A DNA stretch of 64,000 bases from Mantamonas sphyraenae STR306 (lineage: Eukaryota; Protista; CRuMs): the NCBI GenBank assembly GCA_026936335.1, contig JAPMXV010000004.1:310001-374000 (forward strand), given 5' to 3'. The notes beneath the pieces were generated by a model that worked only from the letters and a program-made list of their open reading frames with translations, ran no database searches and was not told the DNA's origin. Positions 30,066-58,443 of this stretch are shown here, in pieces; within the stretch, counting starts at the first letter, position 1, and each line of letters starts with the position of its first letter. Made by a program: the position numbers and the translations under genes.

Positions 30066-30548
30066 GGGTTACTTTGTGGCAGTGGAGGGGTGAGCTGGTT
30101 TTGGATTTGTGAGGCAGTCTGTTCTCAGGGCCTTCCAAGGGTCGGGCAGCCATGACCGGGTCATCGAGCGTGAGGAGACGCTTTTCGGACTGGACAGACA
30201 GAGATGGCGGCAACAGAATTGAATGGGAAGAACGTCCTTTTTGACTCCATTCTTGGGTGCGGTTTGTTCAGTCTGTTCTCCAGAATCGGCTCCTTCCAAA
30301 GGCGCTTCTCGGGATGCAGCCATGACCGCATCGTCATCGTCGCCTCGAAGTTGTCCAAACCAACCACATCGAGGCTTCCGAGGTCCTCCAGCTCTTGAAC
30401 CGCTGCTTCATGGTCTTCTTTGCTGCAGATGTAGCGCCAGAGTTGCTCTTCGTTCTTCTCAGTCGATTTTGGATCTCGAATAGACATGATGCTCTTGACT
30501 TGGTCCATGTGGTGCACAGGGAGCCGTTCATTTTGAGCCCACGATGCC

Positions 30549-30674: not shown

Positions 30675-31359
30675 TCAATACGTGAGAACAATTGCGCCAA
30701 AGCTCAACCCGGCTCCGGTGCCAAAAAGCAACACGCGGTTGCCCCGTTGGATTTTCCCGCTGTGAATGCCTTCGTAGAGCGCATTCGGGATGGTTGACGC
30801 AATGGTGTTGCCGTATTTGCCGAGCACCCAGACCAGTTTGTCGATGTCCCACCCCAGACTCTGCAGCGTCTTGAACCCCTTTCGCGACGTTTGGTGAGGA
30901 CACACGACATCAAACGCATCCAAGGATGACGACAAGCCCTCCTCCACCTCTTCAAAAAAGTCAAACCCGTACTCCAGGGCCAGATCCACAACCTTGCGCC
31001 CCTGCATGCTAAACAGGAGGTCTTCCTTCCTCGTTCGTGGGTTTGTGGTCGGATGCAGAGTCGAGCCACCACCTCGGATGGTGGTCAGCTCGGCCCCGAC
31101 TCCGTATGTGCGAAAGAGGAACCTCGACAATTTGCTCTGCTCCCCCTCGGGCGTCCGTCCCACCACCATCGCTGTGCCCATGTCTCCAAACAGCCCAGCT
31201 GTGTGTGGATCCTTCATATTCAGTGCACACGACGACACCTCGCCGCCCGTGATCAGCACGTACTTCACTGAGCCCTGCTGCAAGAACATGCTCGCCACTT
31301 TTAGCGCCGTCAACGCGCTCAAGCAAGTCGCGTGCACGCTGAACGACGGGATACCTGCT

Positions 31360-31415
<56 letters not shown>

Positions 31416-31958
31416 CACATCCATGCACCCAACCACACAGCCCCGGCAGTGTTTCATGCGTGTCAGTAGCGGCGCGAGAGAAAATTTGGCAGGAGCCCGC
31501 AAACGCACACGCGCTGCTTCCTACATCCCACACCTTCCCCACACCACCATTCATCACTCACCCGACTCGCCCAGGCCGAGTTCCCGTTGCACAAACGGAG
31601 CACTGTCCGGAATTGGCTGTGCTGGGCTTCCACTCGCCGAAATAATCAAGTCCACGTCGCTGGCCTTCAACCCTGCACTTTCCAACGCCTCCCGTGCCGC
31701 CTCTGCAGCCATTGTATGTGCATTTTCGCCCTCGGCGCACCAGTACCGTGTTTGCACACCCATTTTCCGCTCCACCGTTCCTTCTGCTACCCCACACATA
31801 CGGTCAACCTCGCTTGAAAGAACAAGCCGCGAGGGCACACTTCGACCCACGCCCAAAATCTTCACGGGCACCTCGTCTGCATCGCCAGCCATGCGCCCGC
31901 TTACTGGCTCAACACTTCCTGGCGCCACGTGGCCCAAGATGGCGTTTACCCTGTGCAT
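30675..31958 (-). CDS. 3-oxoacyl-ACP synthase III (FabH/OleA-like) condensing enzyme with a PTS2-like N-terminus
   Basis: complement(join(30675..31354,31562..31958)), 358 aa. The Cys-His-Asn triad is intact (ATCLS, PHQTS, GNTIASTIP); also 'LFGDMG' and 'GTGAGLSFG'. The N-terminus reads MH-RVNAILGHV. Confidence 0.9.
31364..31413. repeat. (CA)25 microsatellite in the FabH-like intron
   Basis: Read directly. Confidence 0.95.
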
Positions 31959-32015
31959 CTTTGCGGAAGACTGGTTTTGTTTTTCTTCTGCGTTGACCCA
32001 CGCCACTAATGCTCA

Positions 32016-35000
32016 TCATCCAAACCAATCCAACGCATTCTCCATCATCTTGTCGTCCACGTCGTCGGCATCCACTTCGTCGTCTGCAAACTCGTCCTCA
32101 AAGCCAAACGCGTTGTTGTCGTTCGCAAACGCCCCCATCGCTGCCACATCCATTGCATTGCTCAGCACAGGGATTGCCAACGAATCCACAATGCTGGCGC
32201 GTGCTTCCTCTGCAGCCTGAGCCCGCTTGCGAGCCACCTTTTGCGGACTGGCCACCGTGCCTCCTGCACGTCCCTGCCTGCGTCCTGCTCGCCCACCGGT
32301 CTCCGCGTCCTCCTCTGCCTTCGCCTTGGCCGGTGGCATGTCCACCAGCGACGACATGCTTCGCAATTCCTTCTTCAGCGATGCGTACTGTGATTCTTCC
32401 TCGTCCTCCGCCCGGTTGGCGTGTCCGCCGCCGATTCGTGACAGAGCGTCGCCCATCTCCGACACCTCTTCGTCCACGTGCACCTCTGTGCCACGGTCCT
32501 CCGGTGCAGGCACAAAGCTGATCTCCTCTTCCATGGCACCGTCTCCGCCAACACGCATGCCAAGGTCTCCTGCCTCTAGATCCCTGTCGTCGTCCGTTTC
32601 ACTCGTGCGCCACGTGCCCTTGATCCTCTCCTTGCGTTCGCTCTCGGGATCCATTGCGCTTGCCCGTGACAGCCGTGCAAGGATGCCCAGAGCTGCCGCC
32701 TTGTTCCCGCTGAGCTCCGCCTTCTTTCCTCCACTCTCTGAGCTCCCTGGCTTTGCCAGTGGCCTCAGAGGCGGCAGCGCCACGCGCGATGGTGGCTCGC
32801 TCTCGCTTCCACTTCCTGCTTGCTGCTCCTCCTCTGTGTCCGAATCCATGCGCATTCGCATCGTCGGGATGGGTTCCAGACGCAGTGGCGATGACGTTTT
32901 GCGTCCAGCTGTGCCCACTCCGTCGTTCTCCTCGTCGTCTGTGCCTGTCAAACGCCACGCCTGCATCGGGTCCCGCTTCGGAGTCGCCTTGGTCGTGCCT
33001 GCGCCAGACGCACTCAATGCGCCCATGGCCGCTACCATGCGACCCCCGCTTCATCATCTTGCGCTTCACGATGCTGCGCAGGCGCAGGTTGCGCTTCGTT
33101 TCCTCCTGCTCACGCATCTTTGCCTTGAACGACTCGATGTCCTGCCGGATGCGGTACAGCTTCAGGAACAGACGCACCGTGCCAGTCATCATCACCAGCA
33201 CATACGACACGACCAACAGCAGCTGCACAGCAATCCCTCCTAGCGCAGCTTCTTCCCGGATCGGCGACCCAGGCATCATTGCAAGCAGGAGACCCAGAAT
33301 GATGGCTCGCACAACCGCACTCACAAGCTCCAGCCCAAACAGAGTGCGCTCCTTCTGCGGACGGAACCATCCGATGGCAACCAATTCGATCACAGTCATC
33401 ACCAACAGCACAATTGTCTGTGCAACGGGCATCGACGCCATGAACGCAACCGTCACCGCCGTCACAAGTTTGCGCACAAACACAAGCACAACAAACCAGA
33501 TGCGCTCGTCACGCAGACCTGTCAGGAAGGGCCCAAACAGTTTGATCTGGTGCACAGACGCACGCGGAGCAATGTAGAACACATACGCGGCTGCCAGCAC
33601 AGGCATACCAATCACAAATGCAACAGCCCACAGAACTGCGACGCCATACACCGTGCCATCCACCCAGCTGCTTGAATCTCCCGGTCCCAATGTCAAGTGG
33701 TACAACGCCATTGTCGTCAGCGCCAGGTAGAACACCATGCTGGCTCGGATCACAAACTTGCCAAACGTAAACGGCGTCTCCGCAGCCTTCTCCTGGAACA
33801 GCGCCTGTGCACGCTTGGCTCCCTTTGGTGTGCGCTTCGCCCGCTTTGTGTTGTGCACCAGGTAGTACTTGATGCCCAGCAGCAGCAACACAAGCCCGAG
33901 CAGAAGCGACACCAGAATCATAAAGTACGCCAGCGCGCTCGGGAACAGGTCCCTGTCCGACGCCCCAATCGTCTCGCCGTAGGTTTCCAACGACAGCAGG
34001 CGACGGCCCGTTCCTCCAGTACCGTCGGCCAAGGCCACAGCGCTGCTGTTTTTGCCTCCACTTGCAGTGCCGTTCGCGGCTCCACCCTCGCCTGCCCAAA
34101 GGCGGCGCCAGACCCAGCATCACGATGCCAAATCCACCCGTGAACCCTGTGTACGACGCAGGCAGGTCGCCACCCGTCTGTCCCGTCGCTACGAAAAACT
34201 GCACGTTGTCCACCAGCGAGAACACGTCTCCACCTTGCTGCGCCTGAGCCTGAGCTTGAGCGTGTGCAGCGGACCCGCCTCCTCCTCCTCCACCACCACC
34301 GCCGCCACCACCGCCACCACCGCCGCCACCACCACCACCGCCACCAGCACCTCCACCAGCTCCTCCACCAGCTCCACCAGCTCCAGCTCCACCAGCACCA
34401 CCAGCTCCACCTGCTCCTGCTCCTGCGCCCGCACCTGCGCCCGCACCCGCACCCGCACCCGCACCCGCTGCAGCTCCACCTGCTGCCGCTCCGGATGAGG
34501 CTGCTGCTGCTGCTGCTGCAGGGGCGGCTGCACTCACCGCTGCACTCGCGGCCACATTCGCCACAACCACAGTCACCACCGCCACGGTGGCACTCGTGGC
34601 GGCTTCGCCACTGTCCACCACGCTGCAGTCGGTGCCCGAGTACGTCAACTGACACTGGCACGTGTTGTCAATCAAACACGTGCCGTGGCCGCTGCATGCA
34701 TTGGGGCAATTGAAGCATGTCGTCCCGTTGCCGCCACAAACGCCACAGCGATCATAGACTTTGCCCGAGAACGCCACGCCGTCACAGCCCGCACAGGCGT
34801 TGTTGCCATCGCACACACCGCAGTCATCGTACGCGATGCCCGAGTTTGGCACACCGTCGCAACCCAGGCACGTGGAATTGTTTCCGTCGCACACTCCACA
34901 CGCATCGTACACAGTGCCCGAGTACGGCAGACCGTCGCAGCCTGCACACGTCGCGTTTGTACCATTGCACACTCCGCATGCGTCAAACACAAGCCCCGTG

Positions 35001-38000
35001 TACGGTGACTTGTTTCCTGCCGAATCCAAGCGGCACAGCTCAGGGCCCGTGGGCACCAACTGTGCGCTGAATGACGTCAAGTGAGTGCACTGGCACGTTG
35101 TGTATCCTGGTTGCGACGCCACGCGCTTGCAGCCTTTTGTACTCCACACACGCTCCGCCGTGTCAAAGTACCGGCATTCCGTACGCTCGTACGCCGTCGC
35201 GTCACGTCCAGCCCACGGCAAATGGAACTCAAACGGTTCACTCAGATCCCTCACGGAGATGGCTGTGTTGTTCAGATGGTACAGCGACAGCGACACCACA
35301 GGCGACGAAAGCGCCTGCGTGTCGTTCACAGCCACCACCTCGTGCGGGTCAAAGTCGAGCCGCATCAGACGTCTGTGAACGCACTCGTTTGCACGCACCC
35401 CAAGGGACGCGCCAAGCACACGCGGCACGTTGACACGCGCCCCATTCAGCTGCAGCTCCGTGGCGTTCAGTAGGGTGGACCCAAACACATTGTGCGCCTG
35501 CGCGTACACAAGTGTACTCGGCACCGTCAATTCCTGCTCGCCGCAGGCTCGATCGCGCATGTGGTGCTGGATTGTGCGCTCCACCAGCTCCAATGCCTCG
35601 CGTTGGAATGCGCTCTTGGCCTTGTTTGCCCGCCCGACGCTCACATCCTCGATTGTGCGACCGCGTCGCAGCACGACCGCGCTCATGGCTTCCATGGCAC
35701 TGCGCATCGTCTGCTCCGTGATGCTTACGCTGCTGTTGATTGCTTTGTCCACCATTTTGCGCACGTACTCTGCGCCAATGTCCACCGACGCGGTCGGGCA
35801 CCTCCTCGTGTCGAAGAAGCGCAATGTGCAGCAGCTGCATCTGCTGTTCCACGTGCTCCTTGTTAAGTCCAACTCGCCCTGGTTCTTGGTTCACAATGGT
35901 CTTGACCAGCTCGTCGCGGATCGCCTGTCGCGGAGCCAGCTGTGTGGCATTCTCCACCGGCCGCCTGTTCAAATCGTCTGCAATCACGTACAGCAGATCA
36001 TTCACGCGGTCTCCGTCTGATGTTTTAACTGCACCCGACAGTTGCACACCCACCATCTCCTCCAACACAAACTGCTCGTACGTCTGGAATGCCGATGTTG
36101 AAGGCGACGGCACCACGCGCACCGTGCGCTCTACACGCACCATTGCGCCGCGATTGTCACGCACATAAACTGCCAGAGTCACCGTGTAATTGGACGTGGC
36201 GTTTCCCTGGGGCACACAACGTCAATGCTGCTGCGCTGCGAGTTGAGCACGAGCGGCACTTCGCTTGCAGACCCGCCTGCCGAAACCGCCGTGGAGGCTT
36301 CGAACGAGGTGCCACTCTTGTAGAACACCGAAAAGGTGATGGGCAGATCCAACGGTTCGTCATCCCACTCCAGGGCAGACACGCGGAACGTTGTGTTCAG
36401 CGCCACACCTGCGTGTGGTGTCACCGTCACACTACCCCCGCGCGGTGCCGCGTTGACCACGACGCGCGCGTCTGCATACGCTGCTCCGTTCACGTCGCTC
36501 GCCTGTACTCTGAACACATAAATGCCACCGGGCAGGAGCACGCCAGGATTGATGACCAGGTGCGCGTTGCGCCTGTTGCTTCGCACCGTGGCCACCTCGT
36601 CCGTCAGATCCAGTTGGCCCTGCTCCAGTGTCCACAGGTACGTCAAGGGGTCGTTCGTGCGTGAAGAGGCGATGCTCGTCAGCACCAAGCGCTGGTTGGC
36701 GTTCACGCGGCCCACCGCACTCACGCGCACGCTCGGCACCTGGCCAGCAACCATGCGTACGTCAGTGGTACCTTTGGCCACGCGTCCATCGCTCAAGCGC
36801 TTGATTTCCACCTGTACTTCGTAGTCTCCTACACTCAGCTGCAGTCCAGCCACCGAAAACGTGCCGGTCGGCTCCACCACGCTTCCGTTCAAGGCCACCG
36901 CGCGCGTCAACGCTACCCGGTCCACACGCCACACGGTCCAATTGAAGGAAAAGTCCGACACGGGTGTGTCAACGAGGTCCAACCCCTCAAGCGCAGACAG
37001 CGACAGAACCTGGTCGCGTGCCACACTGCGGTTGGCCCCGGCAATGATGGCCTCAAATGAAGCTGCGATTCCTGTCACTTGCACCTCTACGAACGACGTC
37101 AGGGTTCCCTCTTGCACAACGGTCGCACGAAGCGTGTGCTGCTGGCCGTGGGCCAATGAGTACGCCGGCAGGATCAGACGCCTTCGTGTGCGGCTCGTCG
37201 GATCCAGGCTCAGGCCGCTTGCCGACTGCAGAGTCCATGTCACTGCCAACGAGGGTGCATTGGACGTGCACGAGCTGGCCTGTAGCACGACCTCGAGCAC
37301 ATGGTCTCTGTTGGCTTCCAGTTGTCGGGTGGCGTCTCCCAACAGTGTGATCGTAGGCACGGCCTGGGCGGATTTGCTCACACGCTCACACTTGACGCTG
37401 CTGTTGTACCCCAGAAAGTTGGTCACCTTTAGACAGATGTCTGCCACTGTTCCGGCCAACACAGCACTCGCCGGCACCTCCACCGTGCTCGCTGAGCTTG
37501 CAACTCCACCCAACAAGGAGACAAGTTGGACGGGCGAAGGTCCAGACACGGGCACCACAGACCACGAGTACACCAATGGGTGTGTGCCTGCGCCCGTCGA
37601 CGTGCTTCCGTCCACTTCCAAGCCGTCGCATGCGCCAATTTGGTGCGGTACGTTGACCATGGCCACCGGCGGTTTCACCTCTGCTGGTGCGCTCACGCTC
37701 ACAGTTTGGCCTCCAAGCGCCTGATACAGGTTGTCAACCGCCGTGCTGTTGTCCTTGCCCAGAATGACACCCCCTTTGAGGGCGATCACAGAGCCGATCA
37801 CAGCGGTGTTTCCCTCCGCGAGCGACACTCGCATCGTTCGCGGGTCCACCCACTGGCAGACAGCCGCGGGGCCCACCACGCTCATCGATGCTGCAGAGAG
37901 GTACTTGGTGCACGCGTGTTGCCCCTGTTGGTTCGTGCTGCGGTCAAACACGAGCTCCAGCGCAGACAACAGCTGGTCGAACTGCGTGCTCGCCACACGA

Positions 38001-41000
38001 GGCGGAGGGTAGAACATCAACAACGGGGCGCCGACGTCGGAGAACAGCTGGCCGCCGTTCACAGAAACGCGCAACTCCACACGACGAGGCGACGGCACAG
38101 GACGCACACGGCACACAAGCGCCGTGGCATTCAACCACGTGCCACCAACCACGTACTCGCGGTCAATCTGACAGCGCACGTGTGCAAGCGTACCGTTGCT
38201 TCCAAAGTTGCTTCCGTGCACCACCACGTCCGTGTACTCGTCAAACGCCACTGCCACCGGAACCGCCCTCTCGGCACGAACGCACGTCGAGTTGTCACCA
38301 CCGCACACGCCGCAGTAATCATTCACAACACCGCTGTTGGGGAAGCCGTCGCACCCAGCACACACAGTGTGGTCGCCGCCGCACACGCCACACGAGTCGA
38401 CAAGTTTGCCCGAAAAGGGAACACCGTCGCATCCCAGGCAAGTCGTGTTGTCGCCCTTGCACACACCACATGCGTCGTACGTTGCACCGCTGTTTGGCAG
38501 ACCATCACATCCTGCACAAGCGCCCCCGCTACCTCCACACACTCCACACGCATCGAAAGACAGGCCCGAGTTTGGCACGCCGTCGCATCCGACACATGTG
38601 GTGTTTGTACCGTTGCACACCAGACACTCGTCGCGCACGAGGCCCGAGTTCGGCACGCCGTCGCACCCTTTGCAAGTTGCGTTGTTTCCTCCGCATACCA
38701 AACACTCGTCGTACACAAGTCCCGACGTCTGCGTGCCGTCACACCACAGCACAAACAAATCGATCGTCGTGCTCGCCAAAGGCATGCCTTGCCACACGTA
38801 TGAGAGGGTCACGTTCTCGACCCCGTGGTAACTCAAATCCGGTCGGATGGTGACAAGCTTCACCAGCTGCGCCAGTTGCGCGACCGTACCGTTCAACACG
38901 GCCACGCGCCCGAGCGACTGTGTGTTGTTCAGGCGCACGTTGCTGTGCAACGCAGATACCGTCAGTTGCACAACATCCGTGGCCGAAAGGTCCACGTCGC
39001 TGAACTGCACACCTGCACTGGCCAGCGCATACACGGTGCGATCCACAACCCCGATAGGCTGCGTCTGCGGTTGGGTGATATTCTGCAACGTCAACTGCGC
39101 CACATCGTCCACGCTCTGTACCAACAGCACCGCGCGGCGCTCACTGGCCCCAGCGCCATCGTGGACCCACAGGGATACGTTCACGCTTCCGTGGAAGTTG
39201 GTCTCCGGGAAGAGAACCACACGGCCCCATGCCAGCGCATCGTTGCACGTGCTCACGTTACATACGAACTGCCACGTCTGTGGACCTCCTGGCGAAAGCA
39301 GACGGACGCCTGAACCTTGAAGGGTGACGTTCACCAGCAGCGGTGCCGATGCGCCCAAGTCCACGTCCTCGATGCGGATCGCCGGGAGGGTATATGCCGT
39401 GTCTTCTGGGGTTGACACAACACTCGGAAGGCTTGTGTTGATGAGGGGCAGGTCGTTCACACTGTGCACCACCACAGCAATGCTTGCACTTGCGTTCAGT
39501 GCTCCGTTGATGTCCCCCACGTTGCGGTCGCTAACGCGCACCTCCAGTTGGGTAACACCGAAAAAGTGGGGCTGCGATACAAGCTGCAGTTGTCCAAGCA
39601 GCTCATTGCACAAATCCACGGCGCACACGACGTGGACACCTTGGACGGGCCCGGCGCCGACGTCGACCTGCCCATGCGCCAGCCATACATCCAACTGCAT
39701 TGGGGCGCGCTCGCCGTCTGCATCCACGATGCGCATGGATGATGCATTCACGGGTGCAAAGTCTTCCGTCAAATTGAACACACTTGGCACGCCTACGAGC
39801 TGCGGCGCCGTGTTGACGGCGTCCACCTGCACGGTCAAGGTCAGGTTGACGGTGCCTCCGTGCTCGTCGGTCACAGACACGGTTACGTGTACAGTGCCAA
39901 AGAAATGCTCCACCGGTACAAAATGCAATCCGTGCAAAGTACTGTTCGCATTTGCCAGGCTAACATTGGCACTCGTCGTGTTACCAGCAAGGAGGACGGC
40001 ACCAGACGATGCTTCGACTTGCACTGCAAGTGTGCTAGAGTCTACGTCATCCACACTGACGCCTGTCAACGCGACAGGCACCGACTCTCGCGTATTGAAC
40101 ACAAGTTGCACGGCGGTCAGGAAAGGCACGTCGTTCACAGAGAGCACTTGGATGCTCACGTTGCGTGCGCTCGTCGCCAGCCCGTCTGCAAGCACAAGCT
40201 CAAGCGTGTCTGCTCCAAAGTAGTTTGCGTCCGGTACGTACCACAGGCTCTTCACCGTTTCGTTCACCTGTCCAAGTACTCCTTGCACCACCACTTCCCG
40301 TGTCCCTTGTCCATATGTACCGTTCGTCACCCGTCCATGGCCTGCCCGCACAACCAGCGTCGCAGGGTGTTCCGCCGTCGCGTCAACATCTCGCAGAGAC
40401 ACAACCTCGCCAAGTGCAAAGCCCACGTCCTCGTTGCACACAGCCACACTCTGCGCCACAACAATCTCCAGTGCATCGTCCACCGAGCTCACGTTCACAC
40501 TCGTGTTCACTGCAAACGCCACAGCTCCACGATCCTTGAACGTCCATGCAATCACGTCCGCCCCGTGGTAGTGTGCGTCAGGCACGTAGTACAGCAGTCC
40601 TGCATCCAACTGCACCTGCAGCGTCGAGATCATTCCCTCCAAGCCTATCGTTCGCCCTGTCATCGTGACGTTCACCCCGCCCACGTGGCTCCCATTCGCC
40701 ATCACCCGCCCATGCATCGTCGTTGCTTCGATGCGGATCGCAGGCTCTGCCGTGTCCACATCCTGCAGAACGACTCCCACAATCCTTTTCGCAGTGTCTT
40801 CCACAACGTCCACCGTTACAGGTACCGTTGCAGTCAGCGCATCGTTCACCTCGCTCACAACCACAGTCACACGTGCCCACGTCCACAGTCCAAGCTCGTC
40901 CGTCACGTTCACCTGTACGCTCGCGTTGCCGTAAAAGTTGGCATCCGGGATCATCACCACTGACCTCACTGCGGCCTCCACCACCTGCACGCTGCCCACA

Positions 41001-47000: not shown

Positions 47001-50000
47001 GGGAACGAGTACACATCTCCAGCGCCCATTGGGTTCGTCAGACTGCCGCCCCGTCGAAAGTTGAACGCACTGTCGTAGTAAAACACACGCCCGTCCACCG
47101 TCCACAGTCGGTGCCCAAACGCATCCTGCTCCGTCGATCGGTACGAGTTGGGCGGTGCAAACGCACTCGATCCCGTCGTCCGCACACTCACGTTCAGCCT
47201 CTCCCAGTCCACACTAAACACAACGTCCGTCCGCGAGTTCGATCGGAACAGAAACTCGCTCAATCCGTCGCTCACAAACACCAGCTCGTTCGAGGACGTC
47301 GTCAGGCCCAGGTCTCCCGTCAGTCCAAGCTCCCCAAACGACTTGCCATACGTCACTCCGTTGTCCGCCAGCCACGTTGCGCTGCCGGCCCCGACCACCG
47401 TCAGGTGTTGTCCCCTGCCGCTCTGGTCGTACAGCTGCGCCCCACCACACTCATCCACCTTGTAGTACGCTCGCACATCGCTCTCGCGCCCGTGTCGGCC
47501 GTAGTATCGCAGCGTCGTCGTCTCTCCAGTCGTCACGTGTCCCTCCAACACAATCACCTCGTCGTACTCGCACGTGCTCGTCTCAGACCCCACACGCAGT
47601 GTCTGTCCACTCGCCATCGTGTATCCAGCCTGTACCGTGCCCGTGTACGCAACCGCAGAATCTACAATCACTTGCAGCTGTCCACTCTGCGATGTCCACG
47701 CAACCGCAATGTGTCGCAGCGCTCCTGCGTCCACACCCACGCCCGTGTTCACCGTCGTCCCACCAATCGTCACCTGCACAGACGATGACCCACGGATACG
47801 CATCACGTCTCCGCCATACCGGATGTCAATCTCCTGGCCCGAGTTCGCATTCACAATCGCTGCCACTGTCACCACGCTGTTTGGCCACGTCGACATGCTT
47901 GCACGCGTTGCGTACGTTCCGCCTCCTCCGTTCATCCCCACTCGGCATCCATTCAGGCCAAACCGCACCAGTGCGTTCTGCGGGTCCAGCCACAGTTCCT
48001 TTCCAATCGCGTTGAAGCTCACAGGACGCGCCGTCGTCGCCATACCCACCGGTGCCACTCCGGGCAACTTTCGCACCGTCGCATCTTCCGTTCCGTCTCG
48101 TCGCCACGTCCTCCACTCCACTCCGCTCGTGTAGAGCGCTTCCACTGACCCAATCTGGCCTGTGTTGTCCGTCCACAGCGTCGTCGAGTCGTGGTCGTCG
48201 ATCGAGTACAGAAAGTGTTGCGATGCCACACTGCCGCTCTTCCATCCAGGCGTAGTGCCGTTGCTCGTAAACACAGATGCCCATCCGCCGCCGTCCATAC
48301 TCATCTCACAGTACACCAGCACGCTCTTCATCGGCCCCTCTCCGTCCACATCCACCACATATAGACCGCTCTCGTTCGCTCCTCGTGCACGGTACGCGTG
48401 GCAGTCACGCGCCCACGACGCAACCACCCCGCTCTCCATCTCGCTCCCGTTCACAAGTCGCTTGTAAAACTCTCCACCGCCTCCAGCTCCCACCAGCTGG
48501 CCTGCTTCCACGTTGGCAAAAAGTCGCCCACTTCCAGTCACATTCACTGTCACTGTCAATTGAGCGCCCACGTCCACGTCGCTGACCTGAAGGCCTGGCA
48601 GAGCGACGCGCACATCCTCCGGCGCCGTGTATCCACCCGCCTGCAGCTGTGCCGTCGGTGCGTCGTTCACGCCGCTCACTGTGATCGTCACGTTGTCGTG
48701 AACCACTGCCTCGCCGTCGTTTGCAACCACGAACAGCCTGTCTTCCCCTTCAAAGTGGAGCGTACCGCGGTACGTCAGCGTGGCCAACTGGGTGTTGATC
48801 GACGTTGTACCGCCCGTGAGTTGGATCGACGTGTGATTGGCCGGTTGACCATTGATGCCAATTCGACCATGGTCCGTGGTCAGTGTGACTGCAAGTTGTG
48901 CGCCTGCGTCTGCGTCAAAGACACGAACCAGCATCATCGCGGAGAGGGGTACATCTTCGGTCGCGGAAACGTTCTTTTGCGCAAGCTGTATCTGTGGCAA
49001 GTCGTTCACAGCGAGAACGTTGATGGTGATGTTTGCCACCAGCTGGTCGTCCACATAAATGACCACTGTGTCGACGCCAAACCAGTTTGCACTGGGAATG
49101 TAGGACACGTTGCCCAGCATGTTGTTCATCGCAACCAACGTGCCGGTCAACGAAATGACCCTGAACCCGAAAACCGGGTTGACGGTGAAGCCCGACAGTT
49201 GAAGCTGGCTTGTGTTGAAGAGAGTCAATGCCCCGGCATTCACCGACATGTTGAGTGTCACCACGGCCGTGTTTGGTAGGTCACCATCGCTCACGTTCAT
49301 GGGATTGAGTTGGAGTAGAACGTCTTCGGAGACAGTGTAGTGACGCGGCCCTCCCAGCACGGTCAGGTCCTCTACACCCTGGATCACCAGGGGAATATTC
49401 GCTGTGGCTGTGTAAACACCGCCCGCGCCGTTGTGGCCTTGATCACTCACGCTGATGGTCAAAAGGTCGGCGCCGTTGTAGTTTGTGCTGCCGCGATACG
49501 TAACTGTCGCCAGCATCGCATTGAGTTGAGTCAACGTTCCTGTGCAGCTCATTTGCGCATCTGAGCTGCCATCACCGATAGCAAACGTCAATCCGACAGT
49601 TGTGGCCACTGAAAAGGTGCCGTGTGACACCGTCACGTTCACACGCAACTCCTGTGACGCGACATCAACATCGCTGACGTTCGTACCCACAATTGCCACA
49701 GTGGTGTCTTCGAGGACAGTGACATGTCCTGGGACCAGCAGCAAAGGGCCATCGTTGACAGGTTCCACGACAATCGCCGTCATCGCGGTTGCGTTCAACG
49801 CTCCTGGAGAGCCAGTTGCTCCTTCGTCTGACACAAACACGGACAGTGTGTCCGTACCATGCCAGTGCAGCGACGGCAAGTACTGCAACCCCTGCAACAC
49901 GGCACGGATGGCTGTCAAGTTGCCCGAGCACACAATCTGCGGCTGCCAGAACCCGGTGCAGGCGACGCCACTGCTGTTGCTGGTGGACACCAGTCCGTTC

Positions 50001-53000
50001 ACTGCCGTGACGCGAACCTGCATGGCATGCGCACCGACATCGACATCGGATGTCGCCACACCCACAATCTGCAACAACGTGTCTTCCGAGACTGGACTCT
50101 GTTCAGGCACGAAAACCTCGGGCGCGTCGTTCACAGGCGTCACCACAATCGTCTCCACCGCCACCGCCTGTTCACCCTGTGCGTCTTTCACACCCACGCT
50201 CACGCTCACGTTGCCGTTCTCGTCCTTCCCACTCACATACTCCACCGTCCCAAGCACGGCGTTCACGCTCGCCACACTCCCGTTCACCACAAATCCGCTA
50301 CCAACTTCAACCACAGCACTGCCACTCACAAACGCCTCCACCGGCCCATGCTTGTTCAGCTCCGTCGTCAGCTGCAGATTCGTCGCACGCGCTCCAAGTC
50401 GGTCGTCGTTCCCAAACCCAAAGTATCCTCCGTCGTCGTGTCCCCAGTCGCCCAGCCACAGATATCCGTCTGTGTCCACACGCACAAACATATCCAATCC
50501 GTGCTGGTTCGTCCCGCTCCCTCCCGCCGGGAACGAGTACACATCTCCAGCGCCCATTGGGTTCGTCAGGCTGCCGCCCCGTCGAAAGTTGAACGCACTG
50601 TCGTAGTAAAACACACGCCCGTCCACCGTCCACAGTCGGTGCCCAAACGCATCCTGCTCCGTCGATCGGTACGAGTTGGGCGGTGCAAACGCACTCGATC
50701 CCGTCGTCCGCACACTCACGTTCAGCCTCTCCCAGTCCACACTAAACACAACGTCCGTCCGCGAGTTCGATCGGAACAGAAACTCGCTCAATCCGTCGCT
50801 CACAAACACCAGCTCGTTCGAGGACGTCGTCAGGCCCAGGTCTCCCGTCAGTCCAAGCTCCCCAAACGACTTGCCATACGTCACTCCGTTGTCCGCCAGC
50901 CACGTTGCGCTGCCGGCCCCGACCACCGTCAGGTGTTGTCCCCTGCCGCTCTGGTCGTACAGCTGCGCCCCACCACACTCATCCACCTTGTAGTACGCTC
51001 GCACATCGCTCTCGCGCCCGTGTCGGCCGTAGTATCGCAGCGTCGTCGTCTCTCCAGTCGTCACGTGTCCCTCCAACACAATCACCTCGTCGTACTCGCA
51101 CGTGCTCGTCTCAGACCCCACACGCAGTGTCTGTCCACTCGCCATCGTGTATCCAGCCTGTACCGTGCCCGTGTACGCAACCGCAGAATCTACAATCACT
51201 TGCAGCTGTCCACTCTGCGATGTCCACGCAACCGCAATGTGTCGCAGCGCTCCTGCGTCCACACCCACGCCCGTGTTCACCGTCGTCCCACCAATCGTCA
51301 CCTGCACAGACGATGACCCACGGATGCGCATCACGTCTCCGCCATACCGGATGTCAATCTCCTGGCCCGAGTTCGCATTCACAATCGCTGCCACTGTCAC
51401 CACGCTGTTTGGCCACGTCGACATGCTTGCACGCGTTGCGTACGTTCCGCCTCCTCCGTTCATCCCCACTCGGCATCCATTCAGGCCAAACCGCACCAGT
51501 GCGTTCTGCGGATCCAGCCACAGTTCCTTTCCAATCGCGTTGAAGCTCACAGGACGCGCCGTCGTCGCCATACCCACCGGTGCCACTCCGGGCAACTTTC
51601 GCACCGTCGCATCTTCCGTTCCGTCTCGTCGCCACGTCCTCCACTCCACTCCGCTCGTGTAGAGCGCTTCCACTGACCCAATCTGGCCTGTGTTGTCCGT
51701 CCACAGCGTCGTCGAGTCGTGGTCGTCGATCGAGTACAGAAAGTGTTGCGATGCCACACTGCCGCTCTTCCATCCAGGCGTAGTGCCGTTGCTCGTAAAC
51801 ACAGATGCCCATCCGCCGCCGTCCATACTCATCTCACAGTACACCAGCACACTCTTCATCGGCCCCTCTCCGTCCACATCCACCACATACAGACCGCTCT
51901 CGTTCGCTCCTCGTGCACGGTACGCGTGGCAGTCTCGCGCCCACGACGCAACCACTCCGCTCTCCATCTCGCTCCCGTTCACAAGTCGCTTGTAAAACTG
52001 TCCGCCGCCTCCAGCTCCCACCAGCTGGCCTGCTTCCACGTTGGCAAACAGCCGCCCACTTCCAGTCACATTCACTGTCACTGTCAATTGAGCGCCCACG
52101 TCCACGTCGCTGACCTGAAGGCCTGGTAGAGCGACGCGCACATCCTCCGGCGTCGTGTATCCACCCGCCTGCAGCTGTGCCGTCGGTGCGTCGTTCACGC
52201 CGCTCACTGTGATCGTCACGTTGTCGTGAACCACTGCCTCGCCGTCGTTTGCAACCACGAACAGCCTGTCTTCCCCTTCAAAGTGGAGCGTACCGCGGTA
52301 CGTCAGCGTGGCCAACTGGGTGTTGATCGACGTCGTATCGCCCGTGATTTGCACCGATGTGTTGTCGGCTGGGGCTCCGTTCAACCCGAGGAGACCATGG
52401 GCACTGCTGAGCGTCACCGTGAGAGTTGTGTACACCGAGTCGATGTCGGTAACGCGGACTAAGGACGGGAAGGCTGATGTGGAGTTGTCCTCGACGTGGT
52501 GGGCAGTGCCGTTGAAGGTGATGTACGGAATGTCATTGATGCTCTGAATGATGATGGTGATGTTGAAGGTGGGTCGGTTGTCAATTCGGATGGTGACCAC
52601 CTCTTGGCCCCACCACCAGCGGCTGGAGTTGTACTGCACACTGCTCAGCAAAGCACCGATGCCATCATATGTGCCTCGCCATGTCACAGAGGTCAATGGA
52701 GTCGTGCGTGCTTCGATGAGTGTGACTTGCGAGGTGTTGTGGAAGGTGAGCATGCCCTGGCGCACCTCAAAGGTTGCGTTGACCTGCTGCACGCCAGGGT
52801 ACTCGTGTGTGTCTGCATCGGAGATCTGCATGGGCTGCATGAGTACACCGCCCCATTCCTGGATCGTGTACTGCGTGGGTCCCGAGATCACTGCAGGATC
52901 GTCCACCTCGACCACGGTGATATCGATCGTTTCGGTCTGAGTGACGGTGGCGTCGTTCAGAGTCACAATCACATAGTCGGTGCCGTGAAAGTGGGTGGGT

Positions 53001-56000
53001 GGGATGTATGTCAGGGTGTTGAGTAAGTTGTTCAGGGTCGTGAAAACGCCCGTAGCCAGGTGGGTGCGCTTCGTGGAGCCTCCCATGCGCAGCTGGCCAA
53101 GTACAGAGGTCACGTTGAGGCTGTTGCTCTCAATGTCCGCGTCGTAGGTGGAGATGCCGGACAGAACGAGTTCGGTGTCTTCCAGCGTCGCGCGGCTTTT
53201 TGGATTCACCGTCAGCACGGGCGGGTCGGGCGTGCCAGTCACCGTAACGGGCACAGTGGTCACTGCCTGTAGGTTTCCACCGGTTCCAGAGGCCCCTAGG
53301 TCGTCGACAAGCAAGTTCAGGGTGTCGGTGCCAAAAAAGTCGGCCGATGCTGTGTACTTGAGCTGGTCCAGGGCGGCGCTGACATCTGTGATCTTGCCGC
53401 GAAAGTCTGTGATGGAAACCGGTCCACCGTTGCCCTGTGTAAACTGCAGGTTTTTGGTGGTGCCGAGCAGCAGGAAGCCACTGGTGACGGTGAGGCGCAC
53501 ACGCACGTCTGCACCCGCAGCGTCAATGTCCGTGACGCCGAGGTTGTTTCCGACGGTGGACTGTGCAAACGAAGCGGTGGTGTCCTCGGCCAGGGTGAGG
53601 CCTGATGGTACGCGCACAAAACTGGGGGGTCGTTGACAGGTTCGATGACCAGGGTGGTCTGCGTCGATGCCTGCCCGTGCTGGTCGCGCACTGTGATCGT
53701 CAGTGTGGCGTTGCCATATTTGTTGGGACCGCCAGTGACATGCAATGTGTCCAAGTGGGCGTTGATCAAAGTCAGGTTCCCGACGAAAGCGGCGGAGCGA
53801 TCGTTGGGTCCGGGGAAGAGGTCGTAGTTGGACTTGGTGAGGTTGTGCGACAATGCAGCATGCACGGTGACGTCACCATGGAGAAGCAAGTCCGGGGTGT
53901 AGCGAATGTTTGTCGGGCGCGTGCCCAGGCGATCGTTGGTGCCCTGGTTGAAGTAACCGCCGTTGTCGTGTCCCCAGTCGGCGAGCCAGAGGTAGGCGGC
54001 GGTATCGACGCGTGCAAACAGGTCCAAGCCCATCGAGGAGTTGGCGATGCTGGCCGGGAAGGCAAACTTTTCACCAGCATCGCCGGCCGGTCCATTGATG
54101 TTGGTCATGGGACCGGCAAGGCGCAGGTTGAAGTCTCCTTCGTAGTACATGGCGCGACCGTTGACAGTCCATAGGTGGTGACCAAATGCATCCAGCGATG
54201 TGGTGGAGTGGTATCCACCCTCGGGCTGGAATGCGGCACTGCCGGAGGGTTGGCCAGATACAGACATGTCCTGCCAGTCGACGCTGAGCAGAGTGTCTTG
54301 CTGCACGTTGCTGCGCACGATGGCCTGGCTGACACCATCAGATACAATGGTATACTCGGTGTTGCTGTCGTTGAGGCCTGCGTTGCCGTGGAGACCGAGG
54401 TCTGCAAAGGAGACGGCCGGACTGGCCGGGGCCGGGCTGAGCCATGGAATTGAAGCTGGGCCGCCTGGCCTGCGGACAGTCATGTGCTGAGCGTTGGGCG
54501 ATTTGTCGTACAGAGTGTCGCCTGCACACTCGTCCTGGCCACGGTTGTGGTAGTATGCAAACAGGTCTGCATCCGATGTGTTTGTGATGCCGTGGCGTGC
54601 AATGTGAGCAACCTGGGTGGCGTTGGAGGAGCGTCCAAGGACGACGATGTGGTCGAAGCGGCCCTGCATGCACTGATTGTTGTCATTGACATTGTCGACG
54701 CCGTCTTGATCGCAGCCAAGTACAAATGCACCGCCAGTGACGACTCCAGTGGCGACTGAGTGTGTCATGACGAGCTGGGCGTCGACCCACAGCTTGAGGC
54801 TGTTTGGCTCCCATGTGACGGCAAAGTGCTTCCAGCCGCCGTCAAAGGCAATGGCGGGTGTCGGGGTGTACGAAGTGCCCTTGTAGAATACAACACCGCC
54901 AGCAAATACCATGAGCTCGTTGTCCATTCCAGGCACGGCATAGTTGACATGGACCTTGTTTGTGTTCTCAACCTTGGCCCAAAAGGCAAGCGTGAAGCTG
55001 CCGGTTGGCATGGTCATGGGGTTGCGGATGGCCACGTTGCTGGTGAGGCCAGCCATGTAGAAGGCACAGCCTGTCGGAGGCAGGCGTGCCTGTTCGTTTT
55101 GCCAGTCAAGCCACAAGGGCCGCGCGACACCGTTCATGACCACTGGGCGCGCGCTGTCGCCGAGGCCAAATGGCAAATTGGCTGGGAGGGTCGTGGTTGT
55201 GACTGTGTCCTGTGTGCCATCACGGCTCCAGGTACGAAACGTGGCACTGGTTGTGGTTGTGGAGTTGTCAGCCTTGAGCTGGGCGGTGTTGTCGGTCCAG
55301 AGGAGGACAGAGTCATGGTTGGTGTTGGCAAAGGCCATGACGGCCTGGGCGGCACTGGAGGCATTCCAGGCCGGCGTGTCTGGGGAGTAGAACACCGAGG
55401 CGGAGCCCTGGGAGCCCGGGCTGTGCATGTCGCAGTAGACGACGAGAGAGGGCAGCTCGGCGTCTGCGTCGGGGTCGATGACGTACAGGCCCGAGGAGCG
55501 GAAGCCATGTGCAAAGTAGTCACTGCACGAGCGAGCCCATGAAACAATGGGAGGGATGGGAGTGTTGGCGGGCAGAGTGCCGTGAAAGGAAATGTAGTCT
55601 CGGTTGAGCGGTGGTGGGTGGTGAAACCCAAGGTGTGCGTCCGTGCCGGTGAGGTTGAGGGTAACGACAGAGGAGAAGCCGTCTGCATCGATGTCCATGA
55701 CAGAGATTCCGGTGATGTTTGCGCGAACGTCCTCCTGCAGGATAATGGGCACGGGAGCGGCGATGGAGATGTAGGGCAGGTCGTCCACAGTGAGAACCTG
55801 CAAAGTGACGGTGGCAACAGATGTGTTGCGTGTGTCGTTGGCAACGATGCGCAGGGTTACGTTGCCGTGGTAGTTTGCGGGTGGCGTGTAGTGGAGGGAT
55901 GCTAGGCGGACGTTTAGGTCGGTCCAGGAAGCGTTGCTGGGAAATGCGAGCAACGTAGCCGGGCCGTGGGAGTCTGTGCGGAGGTTGCCGTGGTCTACAT

Positions 56001-58443
56001 CGAGGGAAAGGGTGATATGTTGGTCATCGTGGTCCTGGACGCGAACGAGGTGGCCCAGGTCGACGTCTGTGTCCTCGAGGAGGGTGACGATGGGGGAGGA
56101 GAGGAGAATAAGCGGGACGTCGTTGACCGAGGTCACGCTGATGACGACGATAGCTTGGGCGATTCCTGCAGGGTTGTGGTCGTCAGCAAGGAGAAAAGTG
56201 ATGTTTTGGACGCCGTGAAAGTTGGCAGGCGGGCTGTAGAGCAGACTCGGGAGGCTAGCCTGAAGGGCTGTGAGGTTTCCCGTGGCATGAATGCGAGAGA
56301 TGGATCCCGTGGTGTTCACATAGGAGACGTGGAGGCCGTTTGGGTTGAGGAGCTGAAGGGAGCCTTGGGAGAAGGTGATGTTGAGGGAAAACAAGGCGTC
56401 CGGGTGTGCGTCGACGTCGGTGAGGTTCCAGAACGTGAGGGGCAGGAGGTGGTCCTCGGGTATCTGGTAGGCGAGGGTGGTGTGCATGAGGGGCGGGTCG
56501 TTGACCGGGTCGATGGAGAGTGGGAGGTCGATATCGACATAGCGGCCAAAGGAAGGGTGCGCCTGTGGATGAGGAAGGCCCGAGTGGGCATAGTCGTAGG
56601 CGCGTATGTGAAGAGTGGCAGAGCCGTGGTCGCGGTTGGGCTCGGGCACGATGCGGAGGGACTGGAGGTCATGGGCAAAGGTTGCGGCGGACGTGTTGAG
56701 GACCAGTTGTGTGGCATTGGCCAAGATGAGCTGGAGGGGCTCCGACGAGTTGATGTGGAGGGTTGCCAGGGGATCGCCGTGGAGAGAAATGTACAAGCGG
56801 ACGGGATCGGTGGGTTGTGCGTCGGAATCGTTGAGACGAATGGACGGGTGTCGGGCAAGGAGCGGATAGGGAACGTCCTCGGTGATGATGATGGAGGCGG
56901 GCATTCCATGGATGGTGGGAGGGTTGTTGACCGGGAGACAGAGGGAAGCGTTGGCGGTGGCTGGTAGGGATGTGTTGGTACCAGCGGGACAGGGGAGACA
57001 TTGGGAGGCGGCAGAGGCCGGTGCGTAGGAGTTGAGAGGGCAGGGAGTGCAGGACTGGGCATCGCTCGTGTCTGTGTAGTATCCTGGCTGGCAGGGGGTG
57101 CAGAGGAAGCCACCGAAGCCTGCGGAGCAGGAGGGCGGGGCAGAGATGGCAAAGATGTCGAGGCCGCCGACCGTGGGAGCTCCGTAGAAATCGTTGCCCG
57201 TAGCGGCTGTCGTACCAGTGATGCGCACAAGGGAGTCTGAGCCGAGGCGCAGGGCGACGGCCATGTCTGTGCCGGCGGTGCCAAACTGGCGGGTGGAGAG
57301 AAGCTGGCCGTGGGGAGAAAAACGCATCAGAAAAGAGTCTGCGAAGCCGGCGTGTGTTTGGGAGGGAAGGGCGGCAAAAGTGGAGCCGGTGATGAGGATG
57401 TTGTGTGTTGAGGGCTCAACGACGACGTCAGTACCCTTGTCGTTCGAGGATGAGCCTGCCTGGACGCTCCAGAGCCTGGTTGCGTTGGGGGCAAAGGCCG
57501 AAAGGACGATGTCTGTGGCACCGAAGGCGGTTTGGCCATCGTAGGAGGCGGAAGCGATGTGACCGGTAAAGTAGATATGACCGGAAAACTGGTCGACGGT
57601 GACATGTGCGGCTGTGCAGGCGCCGGGGCCGCCGAGAATGCGCGTCCACATGAGGGTTCCGTTGGTGGCAAGGGCCGCGAGCCAAAGGGCTTGTGCAGGG
57701 CCTACGGATTCGCCGTTGAGGTCGGTTTGAGTTTGGCCAAAGAGGTAGAGGGTGTCGGAGGCGTTGTGGTAGGCAGTGCTGGTGAGTTGGACGGTGGAAG
57801 AGCCACCGAAGCGAAGCTGCCAAAGAAGGGCGCCTGTAGGGGAGAGTTTTTCGACGAGGACGTCCTGTGGACCGACCTTGAGAGTGCCCGGGACGTGACC
57901 TGTGACGGAGTAGGCGAGGTAGAGGTCGCCACGGGCGTCTATGGCGATGGATCCAGGCTGATCTGTGTCGTTGCTGCCTCGAGTGGCATTCCAGACGGAG
58001 TCGCCCGTCAGGGAGTCGAGCTTGAGCAGAAAGACGTTCTGAACGGGTGCTTGGAGCGGGTCAGACATGTTTCCGATGACTGAGCCGTGGACGTAGAGGG
58101 AAGAAGAGGGGCTGTGGAAGAGTAGGGAGGCGACAAAGTCGGCTCCAGGAGTTCCAAACTGGCGGCCCCACTGTAGGGTGAGGTTTGCGTCGAGGCGTGC
58201 CACGATGGCATCGTTGGAGCCGGACGAGTCGCCATAAACAGCTCCGGGTACGCTGCCTCCAAGAAAGAGGGCGTTTGTGTCGGGGTCGAGGGCAATGCCC
58301 TCGGTGCCGTCGAGGGTTGCGGAGCCCAGGCGAGTTGCCGCAGGCTGGCCTGTTGCAGAGGATGTTTGTACGGGTGTGATGCATGCTGAAAGTAAGAGCA
58401 TGCATGTGAGGAAGCCAAGCGTGGCCCATGGGGTGCGAGGCAT
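32016..58443 (-). CDS. Giant (~8,800 aa) polycystin-1/adhesion-receptor-like membrane protein; one gene split by five apparent indels
   Basis: ORFs 53317..58956 (true ATG 58443, signal peptide), 36179..53617, 35349..36215, 33509..35872, 32599..34038 and 32016..33038 join at ~53620, ~36210, ~35800, ~34098 and ~33045, mostly in homopolymers. Domain order: beta-propeller, Cys-rich, ~30 cadherin-like 'VNDxP' repeats, 4 FReD/LamG cassettes, Cys repeats, IPT, REJ, GPS 'CRYFD....WS.KGC.......CQCTHLTSF', Cys repeats, EGF, multi-TM domain, acidic tail. Confidence 0.8.
34275..34520. repeat. Poly-Gly/(Gly-Ala)n/poly-Ala coding low-complexity tract
   Basis: CCN-rich triplet arrays and (CCCGCA)n on the + strand encode AAAAA...GAGAGAG...GGGG in the giant protein. 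Confidence 0.9.
38280..38750. repeat. Six 78-bp (26-aa) Cys-rich coding repeats 'CDGxPNSG...DxCGVCGG...C'
   Basis: Seen in the translation. A second cluster of about 4 units lies at ~34715-35035. Confidence 0.85.
40129..48670. repeat. Near-identical in-frame tandem duplication, period 4,266 bp (1,422 aa)
   Basis: The sequence at 40131 recurs at 44397 and its first bases at 48663. Shadow ORFs recur at a 4,266 offset (41300/45566, 41313/45579, 42513/46779). Confidence 0.97.
50124..52333. repeat. Third near-identical copy of the ~2.2-kb FReD/LamG cassette (matches 46596..48805, offset 3,528 bp)
   Basis: Direct comparison. Shadow ORFs recur at a 3,528 offset (46779/50307, 47574/51102). Confidence 0.95.

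Follow-up and report, generated by a model that had tools for sequence, protein, structure and literature searches.

A 64,000-nucleotide stretch of the Mantamonas sphyraenae STR306 genome (contig JAPMXV010000004.1, positions 310,001-374,000; hereafter the window) carries on its minus strand a single giant gene for a predicted surface receptor, in which a REJ module and a GAIN/GPS region are joined to a membrane domain of the Flc/Pkd2 family (PF06011). In the combination of REJ, GPS, and PF06011, known parts form a domain architecture that is both real and new. The whole coding sequence lies at 32016..58443 (-), with the ATG at 58443 and a TGA at 32016-32018, and comprises 8,808 codons plus the stop, with a predicted product mass of ~923 kDa. 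This open reading frame (ORF) has no internal stop once five 1-nt corrections are made to the deposited assembly, i.e., four read-backed changes and an N placed at a fifth break; the unaltered frame pieces served as queries in the database and fold searches. The initial annotation of the locus, made from the letters, had proposed one product of ~8,800 aa in a 26.4-kb frame after correction of five small indels, which holds for size, coordinates, and strand.

In the deposited assembly the gene falls into six stop-free pieces that chain from 58989 to 32019 on the minus strand in the frame order f1, f0, f2, f0, f1, f2, the longest uninterrupted piece in the window version being 5,897 codons. The frames overlap at each of the five switches and the protein reads through sensibly; the shortest overlap (~40 nt) is found at 36221-36182. 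Logan contigs from four public runs (same organism, same study) were aligned to 31900-37899 (6 kb), and those of runs X1, X2, and X3 each carry a one-base change at 33043, 34098, 35796, and 36213, in every case in 100% of the contig depth. The reads have an extra A after 36213, and the window bases at 35796, 34098, and 33043 do not occur in them. Every read-backed change shifts the frame as needed, with deletions leading from f to f+1 and insertions from f to f-1. Since the contigs of three runs contradict the window and each change restores the frame, these four frame breaks are PacBio assembly errors, and the reads show the opposite of confirmed frameshifts, as the window version is missing at all four positions. 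For the fifth break (53615..53625, -), which lies outside the contig-aligned 6 kb, we infer one missing base in a C6/T4 run (CCCCCCAGTTTT). It is situated around 53620 within a conserved repeat linker that reads ...LVIEPVNDPPV before and VRVPSGLTLAEDT after the break, both sides matching the repeat consensus, and a base was likely lost here in the homopolymer run. Leftover 1-nt indels are expected in a PacBio assembly such as the published one, which was made with FALCON, polished with Racon and Pilon, and amounts to 25.06 Mb in 78 contigs with a GC content of 59.19% (PMC10492846). As single-base errors cut the gene into six pieces in the published assembly, automatic annotation may have missed it.

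Introns behind the frame switches were ruled out for four of the five, where reads and window differ by 1 nt and joints are absent; at the 36221-36182 switch, the GT..AG candidate measures 14 nt, which is far too short. Contig joints are listed only in the 34837-34962 Cys-repeat zone, with sides of 20-32 nt, and look like cross-matches between repeats. The description of the gene as intronless therefore fits the contigs over 31900-37899, in which no intron is found, and elsewhere follows from the unbroken frames. A minus-strand open frame of 704 aa upstream (58993-61104) was excluded from the gene, since it lacks a Pfam match and runs antisense to a ubiquitin E1 gene.

Allelic variation and a sister species both speak for an intact gene. 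Among the three read sets, 25 allelic sites are listed in 31900-37899, 21 of them in the coding part (~0.4%), and the presence of differing alleles fits the diploid state that the genome paper reports for the strain. Of the 21 coding differences, 17 are synonymous and 4 non-synonymous in the corrected frame, where random change would give a synonymous share of 25.6% (binomial P 1.7e-7). The synonymous differences are spread over all frame pieces from the REJ module to the tail, and their strong excess indicates that the gene is under selection. In the databases, the membrane piece finds its best match in a transcript fragment of 582 aa from Mantamonas plastica (EukProt; E 4e-50), with 49% identity over transmembrane (TM) helices TM4-TM7. 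This fragment continues past the position of 33043 and is then colinear with the tail down to the last residues MEN.LD.F, and its continuity therefore gives independent support for the correction at that position; it also means that the ortholog is transcribed in the sister species. As for M. sphyraenae itself, the contigs of run X2 are colinear with the DNA over 31971-34233, 34484-37183, and 37209-37899, and their depth climbs toward the 3' end (78, 105, 221). One X2 contig ends at 31971, 45 nt beyond the stop, and the adjoining contig of the neighbor gene (depth 19) ends at 31968, whereas the contigs of X1 and X3 run evenly across this point. The depth pattern of X2 is RNA-like and suggests expression, as far as contigs, which cannot prove transcript ends, allow. 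In the published transcriptome of the organism, contigs reach a length of up to 32.28 kb (PMC10492846).

The end of the ectodomain resembles that of the polycystin-1 proteins. A REJ module at 35976..37276 (-; residues 7057-7490) matches PF02010 at 3e-27, with its C-terminal end (7e-6) recovered across the error at 36213, and is followed by a GAIN-like region with GPS at 35060..35975 (-; residues ~7491-7795). The GPS (PF01825, E 1.8e-9; also recovered in a scan of the organism's own genome) has its motif at 35066-35179 and reads C..F........W....C...........C.C.HL|TSF, with four Cys, a W, and an intact HL|T. The H-L|T codons occupy 35083-35075, which places the predicted cleavage between 35078 and 35077 (L7789|T7790), and self-cleavage at this site is plausible. 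The GAIN-B part aligns over up to 140 aa to the adhesion G protein-coupled receptors (GPCRs) ADGRL3, ADGRF1, ADGRE5, and ADGRD1 among PDB sequences (E 1e-4 to 5e-4). The REJ and GAIN/GPS assignments of the initial annotation are thus borne out by Pfam and by similarity to adhesion GPCRs. Between the GPS and the membrane lies a stem of four CGVCxG Cys repeats (34709..35017, -; residues 7823-7912) and an EGF-like domain of the teneurin type (34619..34708, -; residues 7913-7942; EGF_Teneurin 7e-7, EGF_2).

The membrane domain truly belongs to the Flc/Pkd2 family. The Pfam "TRP" model PF06011 matches residues ~8150-8420 with 49.1 bits, well over its cut-off of 28.5 bits (E 5e-13; positions 132-398 of the hidden Markov model, HMM), and the scan of the own genome gave 50 bits at the receptor gene. 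This region contains a core of seven clear TM helices (33184..33996, -; residues 8171-8420). Upstream of it are an Ala/Val-rich hydrophobic segment (34499..34591, -; residues 7952-7982), which may be a TM helix 0, a Gly/Ala spacer of 90 residues with 53 G and 28 A (34229..34498, -; residues 7983-8072), and a "QF" helix region (FSLVDNVQFF...PASYTGF...PPW; 34096..34228, -; residues 8073-8116). When aligned to the genome paralogs L004, L003, and L001, the QF region proved homologous to the N-terminal third of PF06011, as these paralogs match HMM positions 3-419, and the hydrophobic segment, which equals the first PF06011 positions in paralogs, forms together with the QF region the first ~130 positions of the family in paralogs that cover the whole HMM. 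Because its two flanks match N-terminal PF06011 positions in paralogs, the Gly/Ala spacer is an insertion inside the PF06011 domain. The spacer is not bridged by short-read contigs, and 34234-34483 is masked as a repeat. After the core, TM7 extends into a basic helix with 15 K/R in 45 aa (33049..33183, -; residues 8421-8465), probably a cytoplasmic coiled helix, which is succeeded by an acidic cytoplasmic tail of ~340 aa (32019..33048, -; residues 8466-8808) that has the motifs WRLTG, LG.L.RLS..SA.DPE, VDSLA.P, FGFEDE, and the C-terminal MEN.LD.F in common with the M. plastica ortholog. The resemblance to fungal FLC/Pkd2-type PF06011 noted in the initial annotation is thereby substantiated, including the segment beginning FSLVDNVQFF, which belongs to the N-terminal part of the domain, and so are its ~7 further TMs and acidic tail; its coiled coil corresponds to the basic, probably coiled helix.

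Structure prediction agrees with this assignment. An AlphaFold2 model of the membrane core, built on an alignment of genome paralogs and database matches, consists of seven long helices plus a further one, also long, at the C-terminus (mean predicted local distance difference test score, pLDDT, 88; predicted TM-score, pTM, 0.80). It superimposes on fungal PF06011 models from the ESM Atlas with TM-scores of 0.74-0.75 and root-mean-square deviations of 2.8-3.7 over 269-291 residues, and the matched Atlas clusters are 98-100% PF06011 (Ascomycota, Basidiomycota). Searches of the core model against the PDB gave nothing meaningful with Foldseek (best E 0.37, generic helical-hairpin matches) and helical hairpins only with VIA-align (Z < 9), with TRP, PKD2, and GPCR structures absent among meaningful matches of either; a PDB sequence search with the membrane core found no relative. 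The Pfam scan of all pieces likewise gave no match to Ion_trans, PKD_channel, PLAT, 7tm_2, or TRP_N/ML, and Foldseek rows to class B GPCRs were insignificant (E 0.9-4, TM-score 0.15-0.2), so that the membrane region does not correspond to a standard 7tm_2 or PKD domain. Judged by the predicted models, the name "TRP" of the PF06011 family has no backing from fold similarity here. The "putative Ca2+ channel" of the initial annotation does not gain from these comparisons either, as neither Pfam nor fold similarity links the protein to TRP/PKD2 channels, and the proposal derives from Schizosaccharomyces pombe Pkd2 only.

By the positive-inside rule the core is predicted to be N-out, C-in: the presumed cytoplasmic loops hold 8, 4, 3, and 15 K+R, and the presumed external ones 0, 0, and 1. 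A model of paralog L004 has a confident QF helix but low pLDDT in the first hydrophobic segment. It is possible that the hydrophobic segment and the QF helix both cross the membrane, giving nine helices and a cytoplasmic spacer, or that both lie outside the membrane, with the spacer as an external tether; the overall orientation is identical under the nine-helix and seven-helix options.

As a separate observation, an ESM Atlas feature search with 33046-34095 (-) found the nearest clusters of this part in ciliate families and in the DGF-1 C-terminal domain of Trypanosoma cruzi (0.92), with a recognition value below the tool's mark. There may be a distant link between the receptor gene and the T. 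cruzi DGF-1 giant-ectodomain families, which we treat as a lead only.

The own genome contains two families from which the parts of the receptor can be traced. At least 56 PF06011 matches were obtained at E <= 0.001, 38 of them above the cut-off, and many are situated within open frames of 1,000-5,945 residues. Four giant paralogs that were read (C70:167-184k, C5:369-387k, C45:234-246k, and C30:76-88k) have ectodomains with Filamin, GEX2-Ig, TIG, LamG/pentaxin, and Ephrin_rec_like modules and a C-terminal PF06011, and lack a GPS. A closer PF06011 subfamily is found at C42:4222, C62:277039, C18:143872, C10:36075, and C5:271717. Its members, paralogs L001-L005, have the order of Cys-repeat/EGF, hydrophobic segment, Gly-rich part, QF region, and PF06011 in common with the receptor gene; they carry up to 13 repeats of the CGVCGG kind or EGFs of the teneurin type, with a Gly-rich spacer in L001, and the hydrophobic helix of this cassette matches PF06011 positions 3-30. 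REJ-GPS, on the other hand, occurs at eight loci including the receptor gene, the other seven being C42:302011-307374, C1:134436-139847, C71:258056-260089, C8:147250-149358, C49:52629-54503, C49:71696-73825, and C49:100449-102515. Two of these seven have two REJ modules, and one of the two also has two GPS motifs. All seven have a hydrophobic segment ~15-40 aa after the GPS, with several more in most, as in PKD1-like proteins, and none has a PF06011, PLAT, or PKD_channel Pfam match; the 33 PF08016 (PKD_channel) matches of the genome also fall neither in the receptor gene nor in the other REJ-GPS genes. The two sets, eight loci versus at least 56 matches, overlap at the receptor locus only. The receptor gene is thus a chimera that has the end of its ectodomain from the REJ-GPS family and its C-terminal cassette from the PF06011 subfamily, and the fact that Cys repeats and EGF belonging to this cassette stand between the GPS and the membrane looks like a trace of domain shuffling. 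The receptor at the same time belongs to a family of PF06011 proteins with giant ectodomains that is large and lineage-specific, and is in this respect less singular than first thought.

Outside this genome, REJ or GPS together with PF06011 in one protein was found neither in the literature nor in the database matches examined, although the searches were limited and the family is poorly conserved. When 1.84 billion representatives were searched by phmmer with the 7-TM piece, 26 matches were returned, and none of the eight that were Pfam-scanned contains REJ or GPS. For the REJ region, nothing was recovered at E <= 0.001 from 5.8 billion proteins (3,200-10,300 aa), which says little because this search depends on shared words, and the nine matches of the GAIN-to-spacer piece in the same database are all CGVCGG-driven and of no use for testing the fusion elsewhere. 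The earlier statement that no described protein has the full combination is therefore upheld among the REJ-GPS genes and PF06011 matches of the genome and the database matches examined.

Several known systems resemble the receptor in part. Like the polycystin-1 family (PKD1, PKD1L, PKDREJ, and sea-urchin REJ), it has a large repeat ectodomain, REJ, and GAIN/GPS with HL|T, but the PLAT domain, 11-TM region, and PKD_channel are replaced by PF06011, and the GPS lies at least 162 aa from the membrane, with Cys repeats and EGF in between. The last six of the 11 TM helices of polycystin-1-like proteins resemble PKD2 channels. Adhesion GPCRs (class B2) show the same progression from adhesion repeats to GAIN/GPS and a seven-helix N-out/C-in domain, together with the GAIN-B similarity; they differ from the receptor in having 7tm_2 and a juxtamembrane GPS. 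With the fungal Flc/Pkd2 proteins (S. pombe Pkd2, Trp1322, and Trp663; other fungal members are Saccharomyces cerevisiae Flc1-3, Aspergillus nidulans TrpR, and Cryptococcus neoformans Flc1) the receptor shares the membrane HMM, predicted fold, N-out/C-in orientation, and a helical or coiled cytoplasmic tail. However, those proteins measure ~700-800 aa and their ectodomain is small and ML-like (TRP_N), as is usual for fungal PF06011 proteins (PMC8618638), whereas the receptor has a ~7,950-aa ectodomain with REJ-GAIN, lacks the ML-like domain, and has its PF06011 split by the 90-aa Gly/Ala insertion. The family is also far smaller in fungi, with 3-4 genes per fungus (four in A. nidulans and three in S. 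pombe; PMC8618638) compared with the at least 56 matches in M. sphyraenae.

The giant PF06011 paralogs are, like the receptor, single long frames with adhesion-type ectodomains and a C-terminal PF06011, but have no REJ/GPS or cadherin-like repeats and are shorter. Giant bacterial adhesins (Cadherin_4/Big_9/VNDxP) share the repeat type of the stalk, which is scored by "bacterial" Pfam models, while the receptor differs from them in being encoded by a eukaryotic gene and in having a signal peptide, a multi-pass membrane domain, and nested fibrinogen-like/LamG modules. Finally, Chlamydomonas incerta KAG2425203.1 (beta-helix/PMP repeats) and a metagenome leucine-rich repeat (LRR) protein combine a large ectodomain with a weak PF06011-like end; these differ in that their PF06011 stays below the Pfam cut-off, their ectodomains are of other types, and REJ/GPS is missing. 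Because such pairings occur in other protists, and some ESM Atlas clusters pair Ephrin_rec_like with PF06011, a big ectodomain on PF06011 is a plan not unique to the receptor.

Taken together, the locus holds a real and intact gene, and we consider it probable that its product is a long adhesion and force sensor with a self-cleaving GAIN domain and PF06011 as output. The protein would sit on the cell surface of a surface-gliding bacterivore with its very long 31-repeat stalk as the adhesion and force sensor. GAIN would cut itself at L7789|T7790, and the two fragments would stay together non-covalently until a pull on the stalk by substrate or prey strains the N-terminal fragment or strips it off. 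The change would be passed to the PF06011 module and the cytoplasmic tail, and a Ca2+ path might be opened, by analogy with stretch-activated fungal Pkd2. Given the distance between the GPS and the membrane, it seems unlikely that a tethered peptide docks into the helices in the manner of adhesion GPCRs; loss of the N-terminal fragment by shedding, or force passed along the Cys-repeat/EGF stem, would be more plausible.

Several points weigh against this reading. An F takes the place of the first W in the canonical GPS motif, and the GAIN similarity covers only the GAIN-B part. After the GPS, 162 residues follow before the first hydrophobic segment and 381 before the first clear TM helix, whereas Arac et al. 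(2012) reported for all GAIN domains in their analysis a position directly before TM1, with a linker of 5-6 residues (PMC3321182), and a tethered-agonist mechanism is doubtful because the distance departs from this rule. The membrane core is unlike any solved channel, and direct channel evidence comes from S. pombe Pkd2 alone, a distant fungal member (PMC9727806). With regard to the gene model, the fifth correction is deduced from the repeat linker, the 250-bp Gly/Ala-coding stretch at 34234-34483 is without short-read contig coverage, and X2, whose RNA nature is read from its depth pattern, is labelled "DNA?".

Some of the same observations would suit a protein that is a structural adhesin only, i.e., a stalk for attachment, gliding traction, or prey capture, in which PF06011 is an anchor or trafficking unit and the GPS may stay uncleaved. 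We regard this as possible but rather doubtful. It would explain why many PF06011 matches lie in long frames, with four giants that combine adhesion ectodomains with the lack of a GPS, and it sits well with a core fold that matches no solved channel and with a GPS distant from the membrane. However, the seven-helix core and the ~340-aa tail are kept between Mantamonas species, beyond the needs of an anchor, the synonymous excess extends into the membrane part and tail, and one fungal family member, S. pombe Pkd2, is Ca2+-permeable under membrane stretch once reconstituted (PMC9727806). Much less credit is due to the idea of an assembly chimera in which a REJ-GPS adhesin and a separate PF06011 gene were misjoined at the Gly/Ala repeat 34234-34483, where the short-read contigs of all runs stop on both sides, in an assembly with other errors. 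The frame is open through the repeat, its upstream and downstream flanks are two halves of one cassette in uninterrupted paralogs, the GPS and Cys repeats occur on the same short-read contigs (34484-37899), and the PacBio reads have an N50 of 11 kb at 106x (PMC10492846), all of which makes a misjoin very improbable. A decaying pseudogene with real frameshifts, as the five frame breaks of the deposited assembly might suggest, is hardly tenable given that four of the breaks are missing from the contigs of three read sets, that the 8,808 corrected codons contain no in-frame stop, and that the gene shows a strong synonymous excess and has an ortholog transcribed in M. plastica.

If the sensor reading with PF06011 as output is carried further, the receptor would correspond, in a single chain, to the polycystin-1/polycystin-2 pair and would stand beside adhesion GPCRs and PKD1 proteins as a third class of GAIN receptor, in which GAIN controls a PF06011 Ca2+-permeable module and which forms, with the other PF06011 genes, an unrecognised receptor-channel family near the base of Amorphea. 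We offer this wider proposal as a speculative one that is unlikely to hold in full. Independently of it, GAIN/GPS was known to precede two membrane modules (7tm_2 in adhesion GPCRs, an 11-TM region in PKD1), to which the receptor adds a third, unrelated one, and its distant GPS bears on how GAIN cleavage is coupled to signaling and on the modularity of this ancient domain. The Flc/Pkd2 domain, which has been studied in fungi only, as a putative mechanosensitive Ca2+ pathway, is here the membrane end of a large protist family, and since many members are giant surface proteins the question of the role of PF06011 is widened. The genome offers many natural combinations of ectodomain and membrane domain for structural and functional work.

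The remaining ectodomain begins with a signal peptide at 58360..58443 (-; residues 1-28, MPRTPWATLGFLTCMLLLSACITPVQTS) that has its hydrophobic segment at residues 7-25, followed by an N-terminal globular region of ~420 aa (57133..58359, -) and a Cys module of the Ephrin_rec_like or TNFR-like kind (56938..57132, -; residues 438-502; PF07699 8e-10, DUF7630, TNFR_ELAPOR1). The globular region had been read as a beta-propeller; an SBBP repeat is indeed matched (6.8e-10, residues 266-298), but a whole propeller goes further than this one repeat match. The TNFR-like Cys module, by contrast, agrees with the PF07699 and TNFR_ELAPOR1 matches, and the signal peptide, Cys repeats, and EGF are also present as claimed. 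The cadherin-like/bacterial-Ig-like stalk (38795..56931, -; residues 505-6550) is made of 31 repeats of ~110-120 aa with VNDxP linkers, and matches Cadherin_4 (3e-41), Big_9 (3e-29), and Cadherin_5 in Pfam. An HMM built from the repeats of the protein itself gave 35 matches, which correspond to 31 repeats of which four are split by inserts, close to the ~30 repeats with four FReD/LamG inserts counted in the initial annotation.

The inserts in the four split repeats measure 525-553 aa each, and each starts like the first ~45 positions of Fibrinogen_C, the match being limited to that N-terminal part. Insert 1 (53896..55554, -) combines this Fibrinogen_C-like segment with a clear LamG/pentaxin domain (Laminin_G_3/Pentaxin); insert 2 (50402..51976, -), which has a weak pentaxin match, insert 3 (46874..48451, -), and insert 4 (42608..44182, -) are of the same kind. 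Part of the stalk is an in-frame tandem duplication at 40107..48706 (period 4,266 bp, 98.5% identity), of which a third partial copy of ~2.3 kb (96%) is present at ~50078-52421. Between stalk and REJ module, 37277..38794 (-) encodes three CGVCGG (ADAMTS_CR_3-like) repeats, with CGVCGG at residues 6633-6730, and ~300 aa that have no Pfam match; an IPT domain had been placed before the REJ module, and residues 6551-7056 gave no Pfam match to IPT. Inside the ORF, the plus-strand GC skew changes sign, being about -0.3 at 40-52 kb and +0.2/+0.38 at 52-58 kb. The switch falls where the duplicated repeat block gives way to the N-terminal part, and amino-acid composition may be the cause.

The receptor gene is flanked downstream by genes for a MINDY deubiquitinase (29139-30068) and a FabH-like ketoacyl-ACP synthase III (30678-31520), both on the minus strand, for which no link to the receptor was seen. 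The divergent neighbor on the other side encodes a ubiquitin-activating enzyme E1 (58879-61981, +) with ThiF, FCCH, 4HB, SCCH, and UFD domains, which is split between two frames overlapping at 60416-60888, either by an intron or by a 1-nt assembly error. ARAGORN reported an 83-nt tRNA-Gln(CTG), probably a false call, at 19217-19299 inside a 2,742-codon frame (14938-23163, +) that encodes a huntingtin-like HEAT protein.

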